From the sequence record LR756501.1: a stretch of DNA of 64,000 bases; one strand, 5' to 3'. The notes below the pieces were generated by a model. It was not told the origin of the DNA and did not search any database. It worked only from the letters and a program-made list of their open reading frames with translations. Position 1 is the first letter of the stretch. Each line of letters starts with the position of its first letter. Below are positions 26,719 through 35,226 of the stretch, piece by piece. The position numbers and the translations under genes were made by a program.

Positions 26719-27348
26719 TTATTGTGCCAAAGGTTTTAATTCGTTCGGAGTTATCTTTTGGAACATCCAATGATCATCCGTTGTAACATGTCCTTTCCTA
26801 ACATATTTTGCGATAGATTTTTCAAAATCTTCAAATGAAAAACTAGAAGCCAATCTAATTACAAATCCCTCTTGTATTTCAGTATTAATTTTAAAATTCT
26901 CAATAAATTCTTTGTTATAGATACCACGCCAAAGAACTGGAACGTGCTCTAATCCAAGGAATTTACTAAATGTAACAGTATCGTCCCACGATAAACAAGT
27001 ATCGTCTTCGTCCCAGATAGAGAAAACCATAAAGTAACTAGGAAGATTTTTATAAGATAATGAATGTTGAGCGTAAAGATTTTCACCACAAATTTTCCAA
27101 TCGTCTGGTATATTATATTTAATATTGCCCCAAAGTCCTTTTACCCAATGTCTTGAAGGATGATCAGCACTATCTAACGAACGGGCGTGAATACAATCAT
27201 TCATCATAGTAGTATTTTCACCATCCATTTTCTCTGTGATAACAATCTCTTTACCTTCGAAAAAAGCAATATCCTGATGGATTTTATCATCCGAAGTCGC
27301 TCCAGGGCTCCAATTTACGTGAAAAGTACGTGGGTATTTACGTTTCAT
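26719..27348 (-). CDS. RNA ligase (Rnl2-like nucleotidyltransferase family)
   Basis: KYPRTFH...SPG...DD, ITEKMDGEN (motif I KxDG), GENL, FMVFSIWD, EGFV, KYVR. Confidence 0.85.
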   Translation of the reverse strand: MKRKYPRTFHVNWSPGATSDDKIHQDIAFFEGKEIVITEKMDGENTTMMNDCIHARSLDSADHPSRHWVKGLWGNIKYNIPDDWKICGENLYAQHSLSYKNLPSYFMVFSIWDEDDTCLSWDDTVTFSKFLGLEHVPVLWRGIYNKEFIENFKINTEIQEGFVIRLASSFSFEDFEKSIAKYVRKGHVTTDDHWMFQKITPNELKPLAQ

Positions 27349-27349
27349 A

Positions 27350-27643
27350 TTATTCGTGTACTTTCTTCCCTTGTTTGAATTTTTCTAGCCAAGTCTCAAA
27401 TGGCGTATAATATCCATTTTCTATCATGTGACCGTATTCTTTACCAGCTTCAAACGCCTTTTTCATATGTTTCAAGGATATTTCAGCGCATTCTTCTGCC
27501 GTACCATACACATATTGATAATCATCTTCATGTTTAGCCCAATCTGAAGCTATTATATTCCAATATTCTTTTTCAAAATTTGAAAGAGAATCATATCTTT
27601 CCTCCGAATTTTGATTTTCATTAAATCTCTTAATGTTTGCCAT
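27350..27643 (-). CDS. hypothetical protein with CTS-like N-terminus
   Basis: MANIKRFNE. Confidence 0.7.
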   Translation of the reverse strand: MANIKRFNENQNSEERYDSLSNFEKEYWNIIASDWAKHEDDYQYVYGTAEECAEISLKHMKKAFEAGKEYGHMIENGYYTPFETWLEKFKQGKKVHE

Positions 27644-27658
27644 ATTTTTATATTATTT

Positions 27659-27982
27659 TTAAGAAAAACATTCAGGACATCTACCGTCACTTACAAATTG
27701 AGTTCCACAATCGTCACAAGTTCTTAAAGGCATTTGTGGAGCAGTCTTTCTTCCTTTTATAAAATTATTCCACTGTTTATGATATTTCTTTTTATAATGT
27801 TCACAATTTTTTTCAGATTGTGATAAATAACATTCTGAATCACAAGCTAATCCTGCTTCTGAATTTGGGTATAGATAATCTAAAAAACAACCCCCTTCTG
27901 GACATTCACAAATTTCCCAATTCTCTTCACCGTAGGGATCAAGTTCTTTTTTAGAATCAAACATTTTAAATTTTTTTATCAA
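27659..27982 (-). CDS. Cys-rich DPYGEENW-motif protein (start may be the later ATG, MFDSKK)
   Basis: DPYGEENW at 27917-27940; CECPEGGC, CDSEC, CDDC...CPEC. Confidence 0.65.
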   Translation of the reverse strand: MIKKFKMFDSKKELDPYGEENWEICECPEGGCFLDYLYPNSEAGLACDSECYLSQSEKNCEHYKKKYHKQWNNFIKGRKTAPQMPLRTCDDCGTQFVSDGRCPECFS

Positions 27983-27984
27983 TG

Positions 27985-27992
27985 CAAATATA
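27985..27992 (-). promoter_or_regulatory. Bacteroidota-type -7 box TATATTTG
   Basis: TAnnTTTG with T-tract about 17 nt upstream. Confidence 0.5.
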
Positions 27993-28102
27993 CTTAATTT
28001 TGTCCACTTAAAAAAATATAATTTAAACTAACTAATATATTGATATATATTAAAAATAACAACAATAAAAAAGATATATAAGGAGAAAAATTTAATTCAA
28101 CT

Positions 28103-29011
28103 ATGAGAAACCAGAAGATAAGGACGTTCTACAAAAAAGAAATGGCTTTAAATGATATAGTCGCAGAGAACTACTCAATGTCGCCCAACAAACCGAAGTT
28201 GTTCATGGACCACGTCGAAAAGAAAGACAAGAAAGACCTCCTTATAGTTGACGAAGACTTCGATCCTTTCGGTAGAGAAGATTTCTACATCGCTCATACA
28301 AAAGAATACGTTGACGCCTTCTTTGATAACATTCCAAATCTTAACGTTAGTAATAAATTAAAGTGGACACCAGAGTTTGCTGATACAGTAAGGTACACAA
28401 ACGCTTCACTTTACGCTGCTATTAAACATAGCATTGATTATCCTGATATAGTGAGTTTATCACCAACTGCTGGATTTCATCACGCTATGCCACATAGAGG
28501 TTTTGATTTCTGCACGTTTTCTGGTCAAGTTATAGCTTCTGCTAAAATATACCAACAATACAAATTAGCTGGCGCTTACATAGATTTGGACGCACATTTT
28601 GGTAACTCCATTGGAGACAGCATGGGTTACGTTAAAGATTTAGATAAGGCCATTGTGATGAACATTAACCCTGAAGATTACCACGATTGGTACATTAAAA
28701 ATCTAAAAAGAGATCTTAAAATTTTAGAGAAAAAAATATTAAATAATGAGGCCGACTACATAGTATTTGCTCACGGTGCTGATAGCACAGAAGACGATGA
28801 TTTAGGCGACGGTCAACTAACTGATAAAGGCTGGGTCAGAGTTAGTGAAATAGTCTATAACTTCATTAACAATATTGATTTAAAATTAGGAAGACCGATT
28901 CCTTTAACTTTATCTTTATTTGGCGGATACAGAAGAGCCAACTTCGATAGTGTGTTGGACTTACATTTAACAGATATAGAAAAATGCCACAGTATCCTCT
29001 GTAAAAATTAA
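28103..29011 (+). CDS. Zn-dependent histone deacetylase-family (HDAC/AcuC-like) protein
   Basis: AHTKEYV, AGFHHA, GFDFCTF, IDLDAHFGN, HGAD...DDLG, LFGGY motifs. Confidence 0.85.
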   Translation: MRNQKIRTFYKKEMALNDIVAENYSMSPNKPKLFMDHVEKKDKKDLLIVDEDFDPFGREDFYIAHTKEYVDAFFDNIPNLNVSNKLKWTPEFADTVRYTNASLYAAIKHSIDYPDIVSLSPTAGFHHAMPHRGFDFCTFSGQVIASAKIYQQYKLAGAYIDLDAHFGNSIGDSMGYVKDLDKAIVMNINPEDYHDWYIKNLKRDLKILEKKILNNEADYIVFAHGADSTEDDDLGDGQLTDKGWVRVSEIVYNFINNIDLKLGRPIPLTLSLFGGYRRANFDSVLDLHLTDIEKCHSILCKN

Positions 29012-29035
29012 TTCTAAAATTTAATATATAGTGCC

Positions 29036-30313
29036 ATGAAATATCTTGGATCTATATTTGAAGAATTGGGTGTGAAAACATTACCAGTGTCGTCTTATTT
29101 GAACTGGAGTGATTTAGAATTCGATAAAATTAGAAAATCCAGAGGCGATAAATATAAGAAGTACGGTGGTAAAGAATTAGCTGAGGAAAGAAGAGCTTTA
29201 AAGAAGAAAATTAAAGCTGATATAGATGAAATCAAAAAACTAAAAGACACTGGAATCTTTTTCATAGAGAAAGAGTCTTTCCCTATGCAATTCTTCACTC
29301 TATATTTTTATAACGTTAGATATAAAAAACCTATATCAGATATATTCAATAAATGGGGAATTGATCCACTCGCTGCTAAAACTCATTTCAGTTTAGAAGA
29401 TAGACTAAATAGGATGCACTTTCTTAAAGGCGTTGATCCTCAGTTAAGAGGGACAGGTCTCGCCGAATTACTTTACAAGGAATTTATACATTATATAGGT
29501 TGGGCCACTTCAAATGCTGACGCTAAACCAGGTGTTAAAATCATATGGTCTAAATTGGCGAAGGATGATGATTTTTATACAGTTGTAACTTATTTTGATG
29601 TATTGGCTATAAGTAAAAAGAAAGGATATACTGACGAAGAGATAAGACAAATAGTAAATAGATTTTTGGAATCTAAAGTTGAAGACGTTTATAAATATAA
29701 GGGTAAGACTATCATAGACGACGAACTTCTTGAAATGTTTCCTGAACTAAAAGATAAATATTACAAGAAAGGTAAAGTAGTTAAAAGGTACGAGAACATT
29801 ATAAAGAAAGAATTAAAATATCTACCTTTTATAAACGACTCTCTAATCATTGACGTTAAAGGGAATGAAGAGTATTGTCTGATTAGAGATGTATATTTCA
29901 CACACGGTAAAATATATTACTGGGGAGTTGTTAGAGCTGGCGATATAATTATATCTCCTTATATTGAAGACGGGGAGATAGGATTCAGTAAAGTTCTATG
30001 GAAAGAAGTTGACGGTTACGATAAATATACTGTATTACAACAAGACGTTGACGTTGTTGGAATTATACCAAACTCAAATGATATAAGGTTAACAAGAAGA
30101 AACGTTAGTGTACAGGATATGATAGATGGAGTAAGATTAACATATATTCCAAGAAGAGTTGTATATAGTGGTGAAGAATTAGATAGATTAGTCTTCTCGA
30201 GAACTAGAGTTAAAAACTCCATTGAAGTTAGAATATCATATCACGACGAAAGAAGAAAGTTGCAACTCATTAAGAACCATGAGTATTACAAAAGAATGTT
30301 TATCGCTAGGTAA
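29036..30313 (+). CDS. protein with GNAT acetyltransferase-like motif A
   Basis: FLKGVDPQLRGTGLAELLY matches the V.P..R..G.(A/G)..L acetyl-CoA-binding loop; late box at 29022. Confidence 0.5.
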   Translation: MKYLGSIFEELGVKTLPVSSYLNWSDLEFDKIRKSRGDKYKKYGGKELAEERRALKKKIKADIDEIKKLKDTGIFFIEKESFPMQFFTLYFYNVRYKKPISDIFNKWGIDPLAAKTHFSLEDRLNRMHFLKGVDPQLRGTGLAELLYKEFIHYIGWATSNADAKPGVKIIWSKLAKDDDFYTVVTYFDVLAISKKKGYTDEEIRQIVNRFLESKVEDVYKYKGKTIIDDELLEMFPELKDKYYKKGKVVKRYENIIKKELKYLPFINDSLIIDVKGNEEYCLIRDVYFTHGKIYYWGVVRAGDIIISPYIEDGEIGFSKVLWKEVDGYDKYTVLQQDVDVVGIIPNSNDIRLTRRNVSVQDMIDGVRLTYIPRRVVYSGEELDRLVFSRTRVKNSIEVRISYHDERRKLQLIKNHEYYKRMFIAR

Positions 30314-31209
30314 TTTATTAGGCTATCGTCACTTAAATCCTTAATATCGTTTTCCCATATATAAAAAACTTTATAACCAAAAGATTCTGCTAATATCTTT
30401 TTATTCAAATCCCTTCTCCATATAGTTTTTACTCTTTCCTTTTTGAATGGGAATTTTAAAACGTCGTTCTCATTATAGATAACAGGATTGGCGTGCCATA
30501 AATCACTATTAACATCTATCAAAGTATTCTTTATCTTTATATCAAAAAACTTCCTACCAATCATAAATCTTTTAGTATAAGTTATATTCAACTTATCAAG
30601 GCAGTTAGTGACTTTAGATTCTATTGACGAATATATTTTATCAAGGAGGAAATCTTTTTGTTCGTCTGATAGGTTTATCCAGTGATTATAACAGATTCTA
30701 TATAAACTCTTTAATTCATTTTGTACTTCTTCATCTATTGAATCATTTTTCATATTTAATGTCTTGGATATGAATAGGTCACGCAGATTTATGAAATTCT
30801 GTATGCTTTTAGAAGCGTTTAGATTCTTCACAAGTTTCTTATTTTTAACGGATTGGAGTTTTGAAACGTTATCTACTCCATATTTAGTCATACAAGTCTT
30901 TTTGTATTTCTTAGTTGATATTTGTTTAGAACTGACTTTCATAGTTCTTCTTTTGATGTTGTAATAATCTAGAAGAAAGATTATATTCTTGTAACTTATT
31001 CTGTGATCTTTTCTGATCTCTGGTAGACTTTTAAGTTTGACGACGTATTCATCGAAGAGAGTATTCTTAGAACTTATCATGGGGAAGTTATAAGATAGAA
31101 ATTCAAATTTGATTCCTTCCTTTGTCCATACTTTCATGTTCTTGTTACATCTATAAATATGGCGACCGTCGTAGCGGTTGATTCTATTTTTACAAAAAGG
31201 GCAGTGCAT
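30286..31209 (-). mobile_element. free-standing homing endonuclease, Vsr/EDxHD (DUF559)-like, possibly degenerate
   Basis: KYGVDNVSK repeat; SSIESKV...FFDIKI...LIDVNSDLWHANP...RDLNKK..A...GYKVFYIWEND; the usual EVNGDYWH reads DVNSDLWH. Confidence 0.7.
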
Positions 31210-31368
31210 CTTCTCCCGTATATATAAATAGTGAGAAGTTGGATAACTTCATATTTTTCAGTTGGAAAACTATCAAAAAATGAGAAAAATTATAATATAT
31301 ATAGTATTAAACGTATTAAATTGTATGTGCGTCGTGGGACAAACATAGTAAAAAATAATTAAAAAAAT

Positions 31369-34300
31369 ATGCCAATAAGTAACAAAGATTTAGGAAAGTA
31401 CAAACGTCCAGGTATTTTCATCGAAGAGATAGATCTATCGATGATTGAACGTCCAATTCAGGAAGTACTAATCAACTTAGTACCTGGCTTCTCTAAGAAG
31501 GGTCCTTTCAATAAGCCTGTTAGGGTTAATAGCCCACAGGAATTTGAGGACATTTTTGGACCAGTGGACAAAAACCTTGAAAACAAAGGTTCATACTTCC
31601 ACAGATTTGTAGAGGATATGTTGACTGTGGGTCCCGTTTGGGCACTCAATTTATTGAAGACTGATCCTACTAGAGATCAATTGGAATGGGAATCTATCTC
31701 AGTTTCAGCTCAGTACGATAACGGTCCTAAGAACTCTTCACCTTATGAAAGATTTTTCAATAGACAAGATTTCTGGGAAAGAGACGTAGAATCCTTTATG
31801 GATATTGTTGATCTAGAATTTATTGATAATCCAAATCAACCAAATCCAGCACATGATTTGTTTAGTATAACAAATATGGGGGATAAGAAAATCACATTAT
31901 GGACATTCAAATCTTCAATAACAGGATTTGACGTATCTGCTGAAAGTTGGTACGGTGGAGCTGATAAAGTTCCTTTATTCATGAACACAAAAGATTACAT
32001 CTCTGATTATATGATTAGTGTTTTATCAGTTGTAGGTGACTATACTGATTACGCAACTCTAAGTGTTGACCCATATTGGGGCAAATACTTTAACGCTAAT
32101 GGTTTAATCAAGACACAAGTTCAAAATTTTGTTAGTGATAGATTAACAACAGTTAACGCTTATTACGATGTATGTTTAATTCCAAATTTCAGAGATACAT
32201 CTGGAAGAGATATGTATATCAAGAATGTTATTAACGCAGCAACCGAGCAAACTGGTTTATTCTGTTATTACAACGAAGAATATCTGTTAAACTCAGATTT
32301 CTACAAAGGTAATATTGATACAATTGGTGCAACTTTAGTTCTTACAGAAGACGTTATTAACAATGTTATTCCAAAAACTTCAATTGATTTTATGTCTTAT
32401 AAAACCAATTTAAGTGAAAGTGTAACATACGCTGAAAAAGGATTAGATTACGTTGGGAACCCATTTGGTAACTACGACGACGATATGATAACATCATGGG
32501 TTAGTGGTAGAACAGGTCAATATACAAACTGGTACACCAACATAGCACCAACAGCAGTAACTAATATGTATTCAACTGTTATAACAGGTGTTGTTTCATC
32601 AGCTATCACATTAACAAGTGTAACAGGTGTTGAAGTTAACGATACAATCTATTTCAGTAAATCATTCGGTATCTTAGAAAAAGATTTACCATATTATGTT
32701 TTAACAATAGTTGGTAATAACATAACAATATCTAAAACCAAAGGTGGTCCAATTTTAACGGGACTTTCTTCTGGCACAAATGTTTTCGCTTATAGTTTAA
32801 AACAAAAATTCTACGATGCTATTGGAAGTTTCTCTTACAATATCAACACAGGATATACATTATCAGATAGTGTATTATTCTTAGAACCATTTGTTGTTAA
32901 CAATAGTGCACAAACATACAGTAGATATGATATTGTATATTTAAGTACAGATAATTCAACAATACATACAGTAAAAGGAAATCAAGTAACTGGTACATCA
33001 CCAAGTAAACCAAACTTCCTTTTAAGCAACGCCAATACAATCATCCTTGGTTATATGAAAATTGAATATAACTTAGTGTCTAGTGTAACTCCAACTTTTA
33101 CAAAAACTTGGACAGCAGTAACAGTAGATGAAACTAAATATTTAGTTTTAGCTGATGGTACAGACGTTTCAGCAGTATCTGGTGTAACAGTAGCTGGTAT
33201 CAAATATTTAGATCTTTATTTCTTAGGAACATCTGGATCAACAGATTATACCAACTATCTCAAATTAAGAAAATCAAAAATTTTCACCGAGATTTACACC
33301 AATTTATTAACTGGTAAATCTGTTATAATTAACAAAGCAGACGGAAGTAAATATTCTGTAACAGCTACAGTTTTTGAGGCTACAACCACATCTGACGCTC
33401 ACGTTATCATATACTTCGATAGTTTAACTGCTACAAATCCATTTAATTATTACGTAAGTGGAAGTTTCTTAATCTATTATATAGACTACGAATTAGATTT
33501 TACCCCAGGTACAAATTCATTGGACACTTTAACAACAACTAATAAACCAATTGGTTATTATTCTGGTCTTAATACTGGTATAGTTGCCAAATACTCAACA
33601 TTATACCAAGATTATTACAACGGTATAATTAATAATGGTGATTACATTTATCAAAATAACGATAGTGGAACAACAATAAAAATTTATTTGAAAATGTTCT
33701 TGAATTCAGATAAGAACTTAACAATTAAATTTGCTAGTTCTCCAGAAGGTGATCCAGATACTACATTAACTAATGTTAGTGTAAATTATCAAGACGCTAA
33801 TGGTAACATAGCTTTAATAGTTTACTCAAATAAATCAAATTACAAGCAATCACTTGAAATTGAAAACACAAGTTATATCACAGATTTTAATAATGTAAAC
33901 TATGTTTATGTTGATAAAACTAGATATTCAGAAGTAACTAAAGGCTGGTACTTAGAAGCATATTATGACGCATCATATTATGATTCCCCAGGTGAAGGTT
34001 ATATCTTAGGAGCAGTTCCAAGAAAACTTGTTCGTATAACAAAGACAGCTATCGATACTGTTAACCCAATGTTAAAAATCTTATACGCTGACGGCCCAAT
34101 TAGAATTTTAAGTAACCCAACAGGTTCAACTTACGATTACTATACCACAGCTTATATGTCGATTGATAACTATGTTGGTGAATACAATGGTTTAACATTA
34201 AAACCATTTACAGTACATCCAGATTCAATGCCAAATAACACAGACGCTAGATTAGATAGCATAATGAGTGTGTTAGATAAATCAACAAACTTAGCTAAGG

Positions 34301-35226
34301 GTTTGGCTAATAAGAACAGAATCACATGGAGATACTTAGTAGACTCCTTCGGTTTAGGTCTTACAGATTATTCTAAACAAGAATTTGTTGATCTTTGCGG
34401 TATGAAACTCAACTGTCTTGGTTTCATCAATATGCCAAGTGCAAGACAATTTAAAACATCAATCAACCCAAGTTTTATCAATGACGATAGAACTATAAAT
34501 ACTACATACATTAAAGAAGGTGGAAACCCAGACCTTAACCCAAGCTTTGAATATAGCTTCGGTAACGGTGTAGGTATGAGTTGTGTAGGTTATTTCTTCC
34601 CATATGTTAAGGACGTAAATGACGTTACCAAGTTTATACCACCTGCAGCTAAAGTATGCAAAACCTACATGAAGAAATTCACTGGTGGTTTAGGAAACGC
34701 TTATCCATGGCAAATCATAGCAGGTCCACAGTTCTCATTAATAACAGACATTTCAACAACTGAAATGAGATTTACTAATGAAGACCTCGAAAACTTCTAC
34801 GCAATGGGAGCTAACCCAATTGTTTACTCACTTAACAGAGGATATAACATCAACTCAGAAAGCTCAGCACAGGTTTATCCACTTAGCTCACTAAGTTATA
34901 TTCACTCAAGAGAAGTTCTCATCGAACTTGAAAACAGACTTTATGATATGTTACTCAACTATCATTGGAGATTTAACACTCCTGAAATTAGAGCTGAAAT
35001 CAAGTTCAGAGCAGATCAAATCTGTAAAGAACTTCTAGACTCAAATGCACTCTATGACTTCAAGAACGTTTGTGATAAAACAAACAATACTGATTACATC
35101 ATAGACTTACAAATGGGTGTACTTGATACATATATCGAAATCATCAAGGGTATGGGTATCATCGTAAACAACATCACAATCCTCAAAAAGGGTACTATCG
35201 CATCTGGTGGGTTCTTACCAGCATAA
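31369..35226 (+). CDS. contractile tail sheath protein (T4 gp18-like), enlarged
   Basis: RPGIFIEEID, VPGFSKKGPFNKPV, EDIFG N-terminus; MGANPI...LSYIHSREVLIELE...FNTPEIR C-terminus. Confidence 0.92.
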   Translation: MPISNKDLGKYKRPGIFIEEIDLSMIERPIQEVLINLVPGFSKKGPFNKPVRVNSPQEFEDIFGPVDKNLENKGSYFHRFVEDMLTVGPVWALNLLKTDPTRDQLEWESISVSAQYDNGPKNSSPYERFFNRQDFWERDVESFMDIVDLEFIDNPNQPNPAHDLFSITNMGDKKITLWTFKSSITGFDVSAESWYGGADKVPLFMNTKDYISDYMISVLSVVGDYTDYATLSVDPYWGKYFNANGLIKTQVQNFVSDRLTTVNAYYDVCLIPNFRDTSGRDMYIKNVINAATEQTGLFCYYNEEYLLNSDFYKGNIDTIGATLVLTEDVINNVIPKTSIDFMSYKTNLSESVTYAEKGLDYVGNPFGNYDDDMITSWVSGRTGQYTNWYTNIAPTAVTNMYSTVITGVVSSAITLTSVTGVEVNDTIYFSKSFGILEKDLPYYVLTIVGNNITISKTKGGPILTGLSSGTNVFAYSLKQKFYDAIGSFSYNINTGYTLSDSVLFLEPFVVNNSAQTYSRYDIVYLSTDNSTIHTVKGNQVTGTSPSKPNFLLSNANTIILGYMKIEYNLVSSVTPTFTKTWTAVTVDETKYLVLADGTDVSAVSGVTVAGIKYLDLYFLGTSGSTDYTNYLKLRKSKIFTEIYTNLLTGKSVIINKADGSKYSVTATVFEATTTSDAHVIIYFDSLTATNPFNYYVSGSFLIYYIDYELDFTPGTNSLDTLTTTNKPIGYYSGLNTGIVAKYSTLYQDYYNGIINNGDYIYQNNDSGTTIKIYLKMFLNSDKNLTIKFASSPEGDPDTTLTNVSVNYQDANGNIALIVYSNKSNYKQSLEIENTSYITDFNNVNYVYVDKTRYSEVTKGWYLEAYYDASYYDSPGEGYILGAVPRKLVRITKTAIDTVNPMLKILYADGPIRILSNPTGSTYDYYTTAYMSIDNYVGEYNGLTLKPFTVHPDSMPNNTDARLDSIMSVLDKSTNLAKGLANKNRITWRYLVDSFGLGLTDYSKQEFVDLCGMKLNCLGFINMPSARQFKTSINPSFINDDRTINTTYIKEGGNPDLNPSFEYSFGNGVGMSCVGYFFPYVKDVNDVTKFIPPAAKVCKTYMKKFTGGLGNAYPWQIIAGPQFSLITDISTTEMRFTNEDLENFYAMGANPIVYSLNRGYNINSESSAQVYPLSSLSYIHSREVLIELENRLYDMLLNYHWRFNTPEIRAEIKFRADQICKELLDSNALYDFKNVCDKTNNTDYIIDLQMGVLDTYIEIIKGMGIIVNNITILKKGTIASGGFLPA

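Follow-up and report, generated by a model that had tools for sequence, protein, structure and literature searches.

Does a huge phage carry its own pair of enzymes for placing and removing an acyl mark? The question is raised by two adjacent genes in a 64,000-nucleotide stretch of sequence record LR756501.1 (hereafter, the window), which the original prediction had read as an HDAC-family deacetylase followed by a GNAT-motif protein, a possible eraser and writer of reversible acylation. The two open reading frames (ORFs), their coordinates, the plus strand and the intervening gap are exactly as it had described them: ORF2 (29036-30313, plus strand, 425 aa) starts 24 nt past the end of ORF1. 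Window positions 27000-32000 correspond to LR756501.1 592060-597060 at 100% identity, within an unannotated, 735,411-bp 'uncultured phage' record. At 735 kb, it has the size of the largest genome reported by Al-Shayeb et al. 2020, a Mahaphage whose predicted hosts are Bacteroidetes (PMC7162821). A read-run search found the stretch only in freshwater DNA metagenomes and in none of the RNA runs. Our analysis leads us to a tentative reading of the two genes as a small acyl-amide modification (acylation/deacylation) module of a Bacteroidetes-infecting huge phage. What is new is an unrecognised, divergent GNAT-like family that is linked in phages to an HDAC of a distinct subfamily, the HDAC enzyme family itself being known.

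Enzymes with the HDAC fold catalyse the Zn-dependent hydrolysis of N-acyl amides. ORF1 scored 58.6 bits against the Pfam family Hist_deacetyl PF00850 (cut-off 27.9, E 8e-16) and retains the catalytic tandem H126-H127, the tyrosine Y276 within G274-G275-Y276, the Zn ligands D163, H165 and D227 (the last being the GAD aspartate) and the K+-site D161, the block reading D161-x-D163-x-H165. All of these residues are invariant across 23 homologues of 48-72% identity. The HDAC call and its metal and catalytic motifs are thus borne out by the Pfam score and by intact, invariant residues: judged by its sequence, ORF1 is a bona fide family member possessing all that a working HDAC-family Zn-dependent amide hydrolase needs, and is predicted to be hydrolytic.

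The best solved relatives of ORF1, whether searched as a single sequence or as a profile, were 9gz5/9RJD and 9gkv/9GKY, both aligned over their full length. The match to 9gz5 (Leptospira HDAC11 clade B; its identity inferred from a sequence that is the same as 9RJD) reached E 6e-13 with the single sequence and 8e-15 with the profile, and class I and II enzymes in the same PDB search matched the N-terminal half of ORF1 alone, at E about 1e-7. 9RJD is the Leptospira interrogans HDAC11 clade B enzyme (liHDAC11/B), a long-chain fatty-acyl deacylase, and 9GKY is the clade A enzyme VcHdaH of Vibrio cholerae, which is almost without peptide deacylase activity; clade B is marked by a GFHH motif with a bulky gatekeeper (PMC13325672). 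Phe125 of ORF1, which precedes the His pair, stands at the clade B gatekeeper position. Like these class IV enzymes, ORF1 belongs to the arginase/deacetylase fold family, is compact (~300 aa), and has the His-His dyad, the Asp-His-Asp Zn site, the GGY tyrosine and GFHH with a Phe gatekeeper (PMC13325672); unlike them, it sits in a large subfamily of its own, and in the foot-pocket wall G-F-C it has D135 where both the subfamily and liHDAC11 have Gly. Going by the top two PDB matches, ORF1 appears closest to class IV (HDAC11-type) enzymes, at a low score (~58 bits only), and acetyl-lysine would be one among several possible substrates.

The ORF1 subfamily counts 879 members at E<=1e-5, most of them ~50% identical to ORF1 and 300-330 aa long, from jumbo phages and bacterial integrative elements. 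In the three bacterial loci examined (Table 1), HDACs 54-56% identical to ORF1 lie directly after a tyrosine integrase gene, and overlap it, beside trmE/mnmE. There the HDAC is the first cargo gene of the mobile element and is followed downstream by a ~290-300-aa protein of unknown family, an HTH_17 protein and a primase/VapE-type gene.

GNAT enzymes move an acyl group from acyl-CoA onto an amine. Their canonical fold runs β1-α1-α2-β2-β3-β4-α3-β5-α4-β6-β7, and motif A (Q/R-x-x-G-x-G/A), at the β4-α3 junction, forms the loop that holds the acyl-CoA pyrophosphate. Assignment of ORF2 to this class had initially relied on one motif-like string, VDPQLRGTGLA, at residues 133-143. By sequence, ORF2 was without a match in Pfam, PHROGs, NCBIfam, PADLOC and PDB (PHROGs, NCBIfam and PADLOC likewise gave zero matches for ORF1). 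A word-based search returned nine full-length orthologues only, at 63-98% identity, and a profile search of 1.84 billion representatives returned 114 clusters, nearly all sharing just ORF2 residues ~70-240. This delimits a domain family with its core at residues 120-195 that occurs in many architectures. One 1011-aa protein on a 20-kb metagenome contig (P0017) holds three tandem copies of the domain, and another member carries an ART-PolyVal ADP-ribosyltransferase domain, which suggests modular use of the domain within large phage proteins with several effectors.

We then relied on structure prediction for the fold. A full-length AlphaFold2 model from the 9 orthologues was unusable (predicted local distance difference test, pLDDT, 40) and was set aside; the model of residues 1-258 from a 67-sequence alignment was confident (pLDDT 85, predicted template modelling score, pTM, 0.82). 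It shows two long N-terminal helices followed by strands 74-78, 88-96, 117-121 and 126-130, helix 142-154, strand 156-160, helix 165-175, and strands 180-184 and 188-193, such that β2-β7, α3 and α4 of the GNAT fold are present. Motif A, R138-G-T-G141-L-A143, falls between strand 126-130 (β4) and helix 142-154 (α3). Across 129 family members its glycines are conserved at G139 (96%), G141 (85%) and G143 (92%; ORF2 itself has A143), as are N125, R126 (93%), H128 (95%), Y147 (98%), S159 (94%) and W171 (92%), all of which are present in ORF2.

Comparison of this model with 48,161 chains by VIA-align placed GNAT acetyltransferases in about 45 of the 50 best rows (Z 5.0-5.7), spanning ORF2 residues 70-198 and most of each GNAT chain. 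Foldseek against PDB returned mostly GNATs (SpeG, NAGS, MsPat, RimI, Hat1), at E about 1e-2 only. Against viral models (BFVD), a 655-aa phage protein of the same family came first (E 8e-10), followed by a 144-aa 'NAT_SF domain' protein (E 2e-5, TMt 0.68, root-mean-square deviation 3.1 Å) and then by many acetyltransferases. The sole PDB match of the domain-family profile was the GNAT YqjY, aligned on β4-motif A-α3 at E 0.38, and hhalign against the phage's own canonical GNAT covered that segment too (E 0.009 but prob 4%). In the ESM Atlas, residues 65-250 have viral PF00583 clusters as neighbours (0.94-0.95, 182-191 shared features). Taken together, five kinds of evidence for a GNAT-type fold are concordant, each of them modest individually and with structural scores weak to middling. 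On this model-based footing, the N-terminal half of ORF2 (domain ~70-198) very probably belongs to the GNAT/NAT fold class, as a divergent member that has kept the acyl-CoA loop. Foldseek and the accompanying fold searches thus point to a GNAT fold within 29036-30313, and the GNAT call has gained fold-level support beyond its single motif, although no GNAT sequence model reaches significance. The canonical GNAT mentioned above (LR756501.1 159612-159830; PF00583, 40.5 bits) lies ~430 kb from the HDAC, so the HDAC's neighbour is not the sole acyltransferase candidate in the genome.

The C-terminal 165 residues of ORF2 are confined to the 9 close orthologues, where they are conserved, and gave no Pfam or ESM Atlas match; they may form a targeting or regulatory part. 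The orthologue profile had one weak PDB match, at residues 244-355 (window 29765-30100), to the CBS-pair protein MJ0922 (2p9m, E 0.029), over a stretch with CBS-like 'vvGII..D' strings. We set a CBS-pair identity aside as unconfirmed because a Pfam CBS search of the complete 735-kb record found nothing at E<=10. A match of residues 319-373 to P0101, a repetitive FN3-like protein, was judged spurious.

If the two enzymes act together, their genes might be expected to travel together, as the original prediction had proposed to check. The HDAC lies directly upstream in all 9 loci with an ORF2 orthologue; these loci are syntenic over more genes, so the pairing there adds little. We scanned one viral collection, IMG/VR, with the HDAC alignment, searched the ORFs of the resulting 57 loci with a hidden Markov model (HMM) of the domain, and added a handful of whole records. 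In 27 of the 57 loci, a 603-664-aa protein carries the same N-terminal domain (hhalign E 3.8e-11); in the hhalign comparison, the C-termini of these 650-aa relatives are unrelated to that of ORF2. These 27 loci, on contigs of up to ~290 kb and in complete genomes of ~250-270 kb, form a separate phage clade in which the domain protein is encoded on the strand opposite to the HDAC, 0.9-3 kb upstream of it, with a ~240-aa acidic ORF in between. Compared with the whole window, loci of this ~270-kb clade have only the HDAC and this domain in common. The third genes of the two lineages (a 307-aa minus-strand ORF and the ~240-aa acidic ORF) were considered as homologues and proved unrelated. In two loci, L054 (6065-7933) and L056 (same position), the interval that separates the HDAC from the GNAT-like gene also contains an Hsp70/DnaK gene of full length (Pfam E 8e-256).

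The 735-kb genome and a complete, terminally repeated 271-kb genome each have one copy of the HDAC and one of the domain, and whole-record searches found the domain single-copy in two further records. Since both are single-copy, gene and genome lengths give a rough estimate for chance proximity of 0.6% (735-kb) and 2% (271-kb). In an HDAC tree (a quick IQ-TREE search, unrooted and with some long branches), the window clade and the ~270-kb clade are not sisters: starred branches and bacterial and unpaired phage HDACs lie between them, and the label 'domain nearby' needs at least three changes. One HDAC-bearing fragment has a copy of the domain 12.5 kb away. The pairing thus extends from the close relatives to an independent jumbo-phage clade and fails in a 636-kb sister and in four complete phages, described below. 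This sequence-level pattern, a linkage beyond chance that survives full turnover of the neighbourhood yet is facultative, favours a functional link.

The putative late box noticed earlier before ORF2 turned out to be a real motif, enriched, oriented and conserved. The element TAATATATA, which usually reads TTTAATATATA, has 20 copies in the window where 5.25 would be expected, an about fourfold enrichment, and no shuffle reached 20. All copies are intergenic and face a downstream ORF, mostly at a distance of 5-67 nt and for the most part 5-25 nt from its start (examples in Table 1). The copy before ORF2, TTTAATATATAG at 29019-29031 with its core TAATATATA at 29022-29030, ends 5 nt before the ATG, and the 12-nt block of TTTAATATATAG is invariant in six orthologous loci, including those where the spacer measures 55 nt rather than 24. 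The element is probably this phage's own promoter element, giving very short leaders. Upstream of ORF1, on its strand, an exact TAATATATA copy is absent and a conserved GATATATAAGGAG stands instead, so that separate regulation of the two genes is plausible.

The chemistries of the two folds, acyl transfer and N-acyl hydrolysis, are complementary. In the coupled module that is our best-supported reading, ORF2 would use acyl-CoA to acylate an amine on a protein or metabolite of the host (or phage), its lineage-specific C-terminal part choosing the target, and ORF1 would hydrolyse the same kind of N-acyl bond that ORF2 makes. ORF1 could either reset or limit the ORF2 mark, or first strip a host mark from the same site. 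Since ORF1 is class IV-like and has Phe as its gatekeeper, an acyl chain longer than acetyl is possible, and the promoter-like element before ORF2 could place the two genes on different expression schedules. We infer both the shared substrate and the different timing. A more specific form of the proposal is conceivable but on the unlikely side: jumbo and huge phages would carry a hitherto unrecognised system of two enzymes, in which Pfam-invisible GNAT-like acyltransferases, their targeting regions interchangeable, would place a (possibly long-chain) acyl mark on host proteins during infection and a class IV-like deacylase dedicated to the task would take it off. Of the first reading as a whole, the HDAC, the GNAT fold and a partial co-occurrence have held; the pairing is not universal, and 'acetyl' is not established.

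A precedent for a writer and an eraser acting on one substrate exists in Bacillus acuABC, whose GNAT (AcuA) and HDAC (AcuC) have AcsA as their common substrate, with AcuC regulated by the CBS protein AcuB (PMC13121692). As in that operon, a GNAT-fold acyltransferase gene and an HDAC-family deacylase gene of opposing chemistry are neighbours here. However, AcuC is a class I enzyme and ORF1 is class IV-like, ORF2 shows no sequence homology to AcuA, a gene for AcsA is missing from the vicinity (the neighbours being an RNA ligase and proteins of unknown family), and AcuB is a CBS-ACT protein, whereas Pfam CBS is missing from the phage record. A metabolic operon is thus compared with a phage setting, and the two have the logic in common and no specific members. 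Phage GNATs predicted to modify host proteins (phiKMV Rac; jumbo-phage and polyvalent GNATs, PMC7824862) resemble ORF2 in that predicted role and differ in that the ORF2 family is invisible to every GNAT Pfam model. That jumbo-phage survey describes no HDAC partner, and 'HDAC' is absent from its text.

Several observations weigh against the acyl-amide module, and those that concern linkage speak for two independent host-takeover enzymes with different targets, brought together by inheritance, co-regulation or chance, an explanation that we consider possible without favouring it. The HDAC is alone in 29 of the 57 viral loci; the domain is absent from four complete or near-complete HDAC-bearing phages (482, 391, 246 and 120 kb); and in bacterial integrative elements the subfamily HDACs follow integrases and have unrelated neighbours. 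Conversely, domain-family members exist without an HDAC nearby. The 636-kb Mahaphage LR756504 has a 50%-identical HDAC at 321 kb, with downstream genes that differ from those of the window, and four copies of the domain (226, 372, 594 and 609 kb), none within 50 kb of that HDAC. The genes after the HDAC in this relative and in the bacterial elements were examined as relatives of ORF2 and are unrelated to it. None of the 245 collected proteins is a fusion of HDAC and GNAT-like domain, ORF2 has its own conserved upstream element, and the surrounding genes are syntenic too within each lineage. Against independence, the two single-copy genes are 24 nt apart in one lineage and within ~0.9 kb in another; these lineages have nothing else in common locally and are not sisters on the HDAC tree. 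Further points concern the chemistry itself. Characterised class IV members prefer long fatty-acyl or non-peptide substrates over acetyl-lysine (PMC13325672), so 'acetyl' cannot be taken as given for ORF1. For ORF2, Pfam gave nothing at E<=1, nor even at E<=10 for the N-terminal half, none of the 112 domain-family members searched matched a GNAT Pfam family at E<=0.01, and the VIA-align Z of <6 is under the level at which the tool's notes place confidence from score alone. The model also lacks α1-α2 between β1 and β2, a region that is helical in a non-canonical way and for which the N-terminal helices may substitute, and the conserved R-x-H, Y and S-S set differs from the usual GNAT catalytic set. 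Such features would suit a degenerate fold used for binding or for other chemistry, leaving the pair with no writer. We regard this as distinctly unlikely, given that the motif A glycines are 85-96% conserved at the expected structural position and that polar residues so strongly conserved point to an active site or a bound ligand.

The GNAT toxins TacT and AtaT act by acylating aminoacyl-tRNA. By analogy, ORF2 could acylate an essential host component while the deacylase protects molecules that the phage needs or limits the damage; AtaT and TacT2 are among the structural neighbours found by VIA-align, the two genes are closely linked, and family domains occur in polyvalent-type proteins, one of them with ART-PolyVal. 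The toxin matches are, however, no better than those to dozens of other GNATs, deacylation of aminoacyl-tRNA by HDAC-family enzymes is not known, and neither PADLOC nor toxin families matched, which together make a toxin and its antidote improbable here. Equally improbable, in our view, is control of polyamines, with ORF2 as a spermidine/spermine N-acetyltransferase (SAT) and ORF1 as an acetylpolyamine amidohydrolase (APAH) tuning free spermidine during infection. Phage spermidine N-acetyltransferases and giant-virus APAHs are functional (PMC9992855), GNAT and HDAC-family enzymes there add and remove acetyl on one metabolite class, and SpeG chains are among the best Foldseek matches of ORF2. 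Those SpeG matches are nonetheless weak (E>1e-2), and the SAT enzymes are compact, whereas ORF2 has N-terminal helices and an additional C-terminal region of 165 aa. ORF1 is not APAH-like either: its nearest solved relatives are class IV, and APAH-named chains account for none of the 45 PDB sequences at E<=1e-5 and none of the 60 listed single-sequence matches. In that study, SATs were found in phages and APAH homologues reported only in Imitervirales, not as a gene pair (PMC9992855).

Coordinates are collected in Table 1. Immediately before the pair, the opposite strand encodes an RNA ligase (PF09414, E 1e-33), which keeps this position in related loci L001-L004 and not in L006. Downstream, a 307-aa ORF converges on ORF2 and overlaps its 3' end by 28 nt; it starts with a CxxC zinc-ribbon-like N-terminus, has no family match and is kept (282-308 aa) in all related loci, making it the constant third neighbour of the pair in the window lineage. 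Beyond it lies a 1285-aa ORF without family match, with a 1283-aa downstream counterpart in loci L004/L005.

Table 1 Features of the HDAC/GNAT-like locus and of the loci compared with it. Positions refer to the window unless a record or locus is named; residues are those of ORF2.
Feature	Position	Strand	Description
ORF1 (P0001, 302 aa)	28103..29011	+	Compact, predicted Zn-dependent HDAC-family deacylase, class IV (HDAC11)-like
Spacer, 24 nt	29012..29035	+	Holds the conserved upstream element TTTAATATATAG, promoter-like
ORF2 N-terminal half (P0002 residues 1-258)	29036..29809	+	Two N-terminal helices, then a very probable divergent GNAT-fold domain
ORF2 C-terminal region (residues 259-425)	29810..30313	+	Predicted β-rich; 9 close orthologues only
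ORF2 family-conserved residues	N125, R126, H128, G132, G139, G141, Y147, G155, S159, W171, D177, D179, K194		
TAATATATA example sites	3348, 7149, 10295, 20934, 29022, 35321	+	
TAATATATA example sites	26702, 46454, 54158	-	
RNA ligase gene	26719-27348	-	PF09414
307-aa ORF	30286-31209	-	Convergent with ORF2
1285-aa ORF	31369-35226	+	
Canonical GNAT of the same phage	L075 1015-1878	-	PF00583
Bacterial integrase-HDAC locus	L009 1140-3193		
Bacterial integrase-HDAC locus	L010/L011 3889-5966		
Bacterial integrase-HDAC locus	L012 3908-5909		

We found no study of HDAC-family enzymes in phages; the jumbo-phage survey and the huge-phage paper are both silent on them, and the text of the latter (PMC7162821) mentions neither deacetylases nor acetyltransferases. 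ORF2 reveals a largely viral domain family of >100 clusters that current family libraries have missed and that looks like a divergent GNAT. Many class IV HDACs have no known physiological substrate (PMC13325672), and a conserved genomic partner offers a concrete route to them. Should the two-enzyme reading of this locus be true, it would amount to a phage-run reversible acylation switch in bacteria; if ORF1 and ORF2 share a substrate, they would constitute the first phage-encoded reversible acylation system and would give a handle on how huge phages reprogramme their Bacteroidetes hosts.

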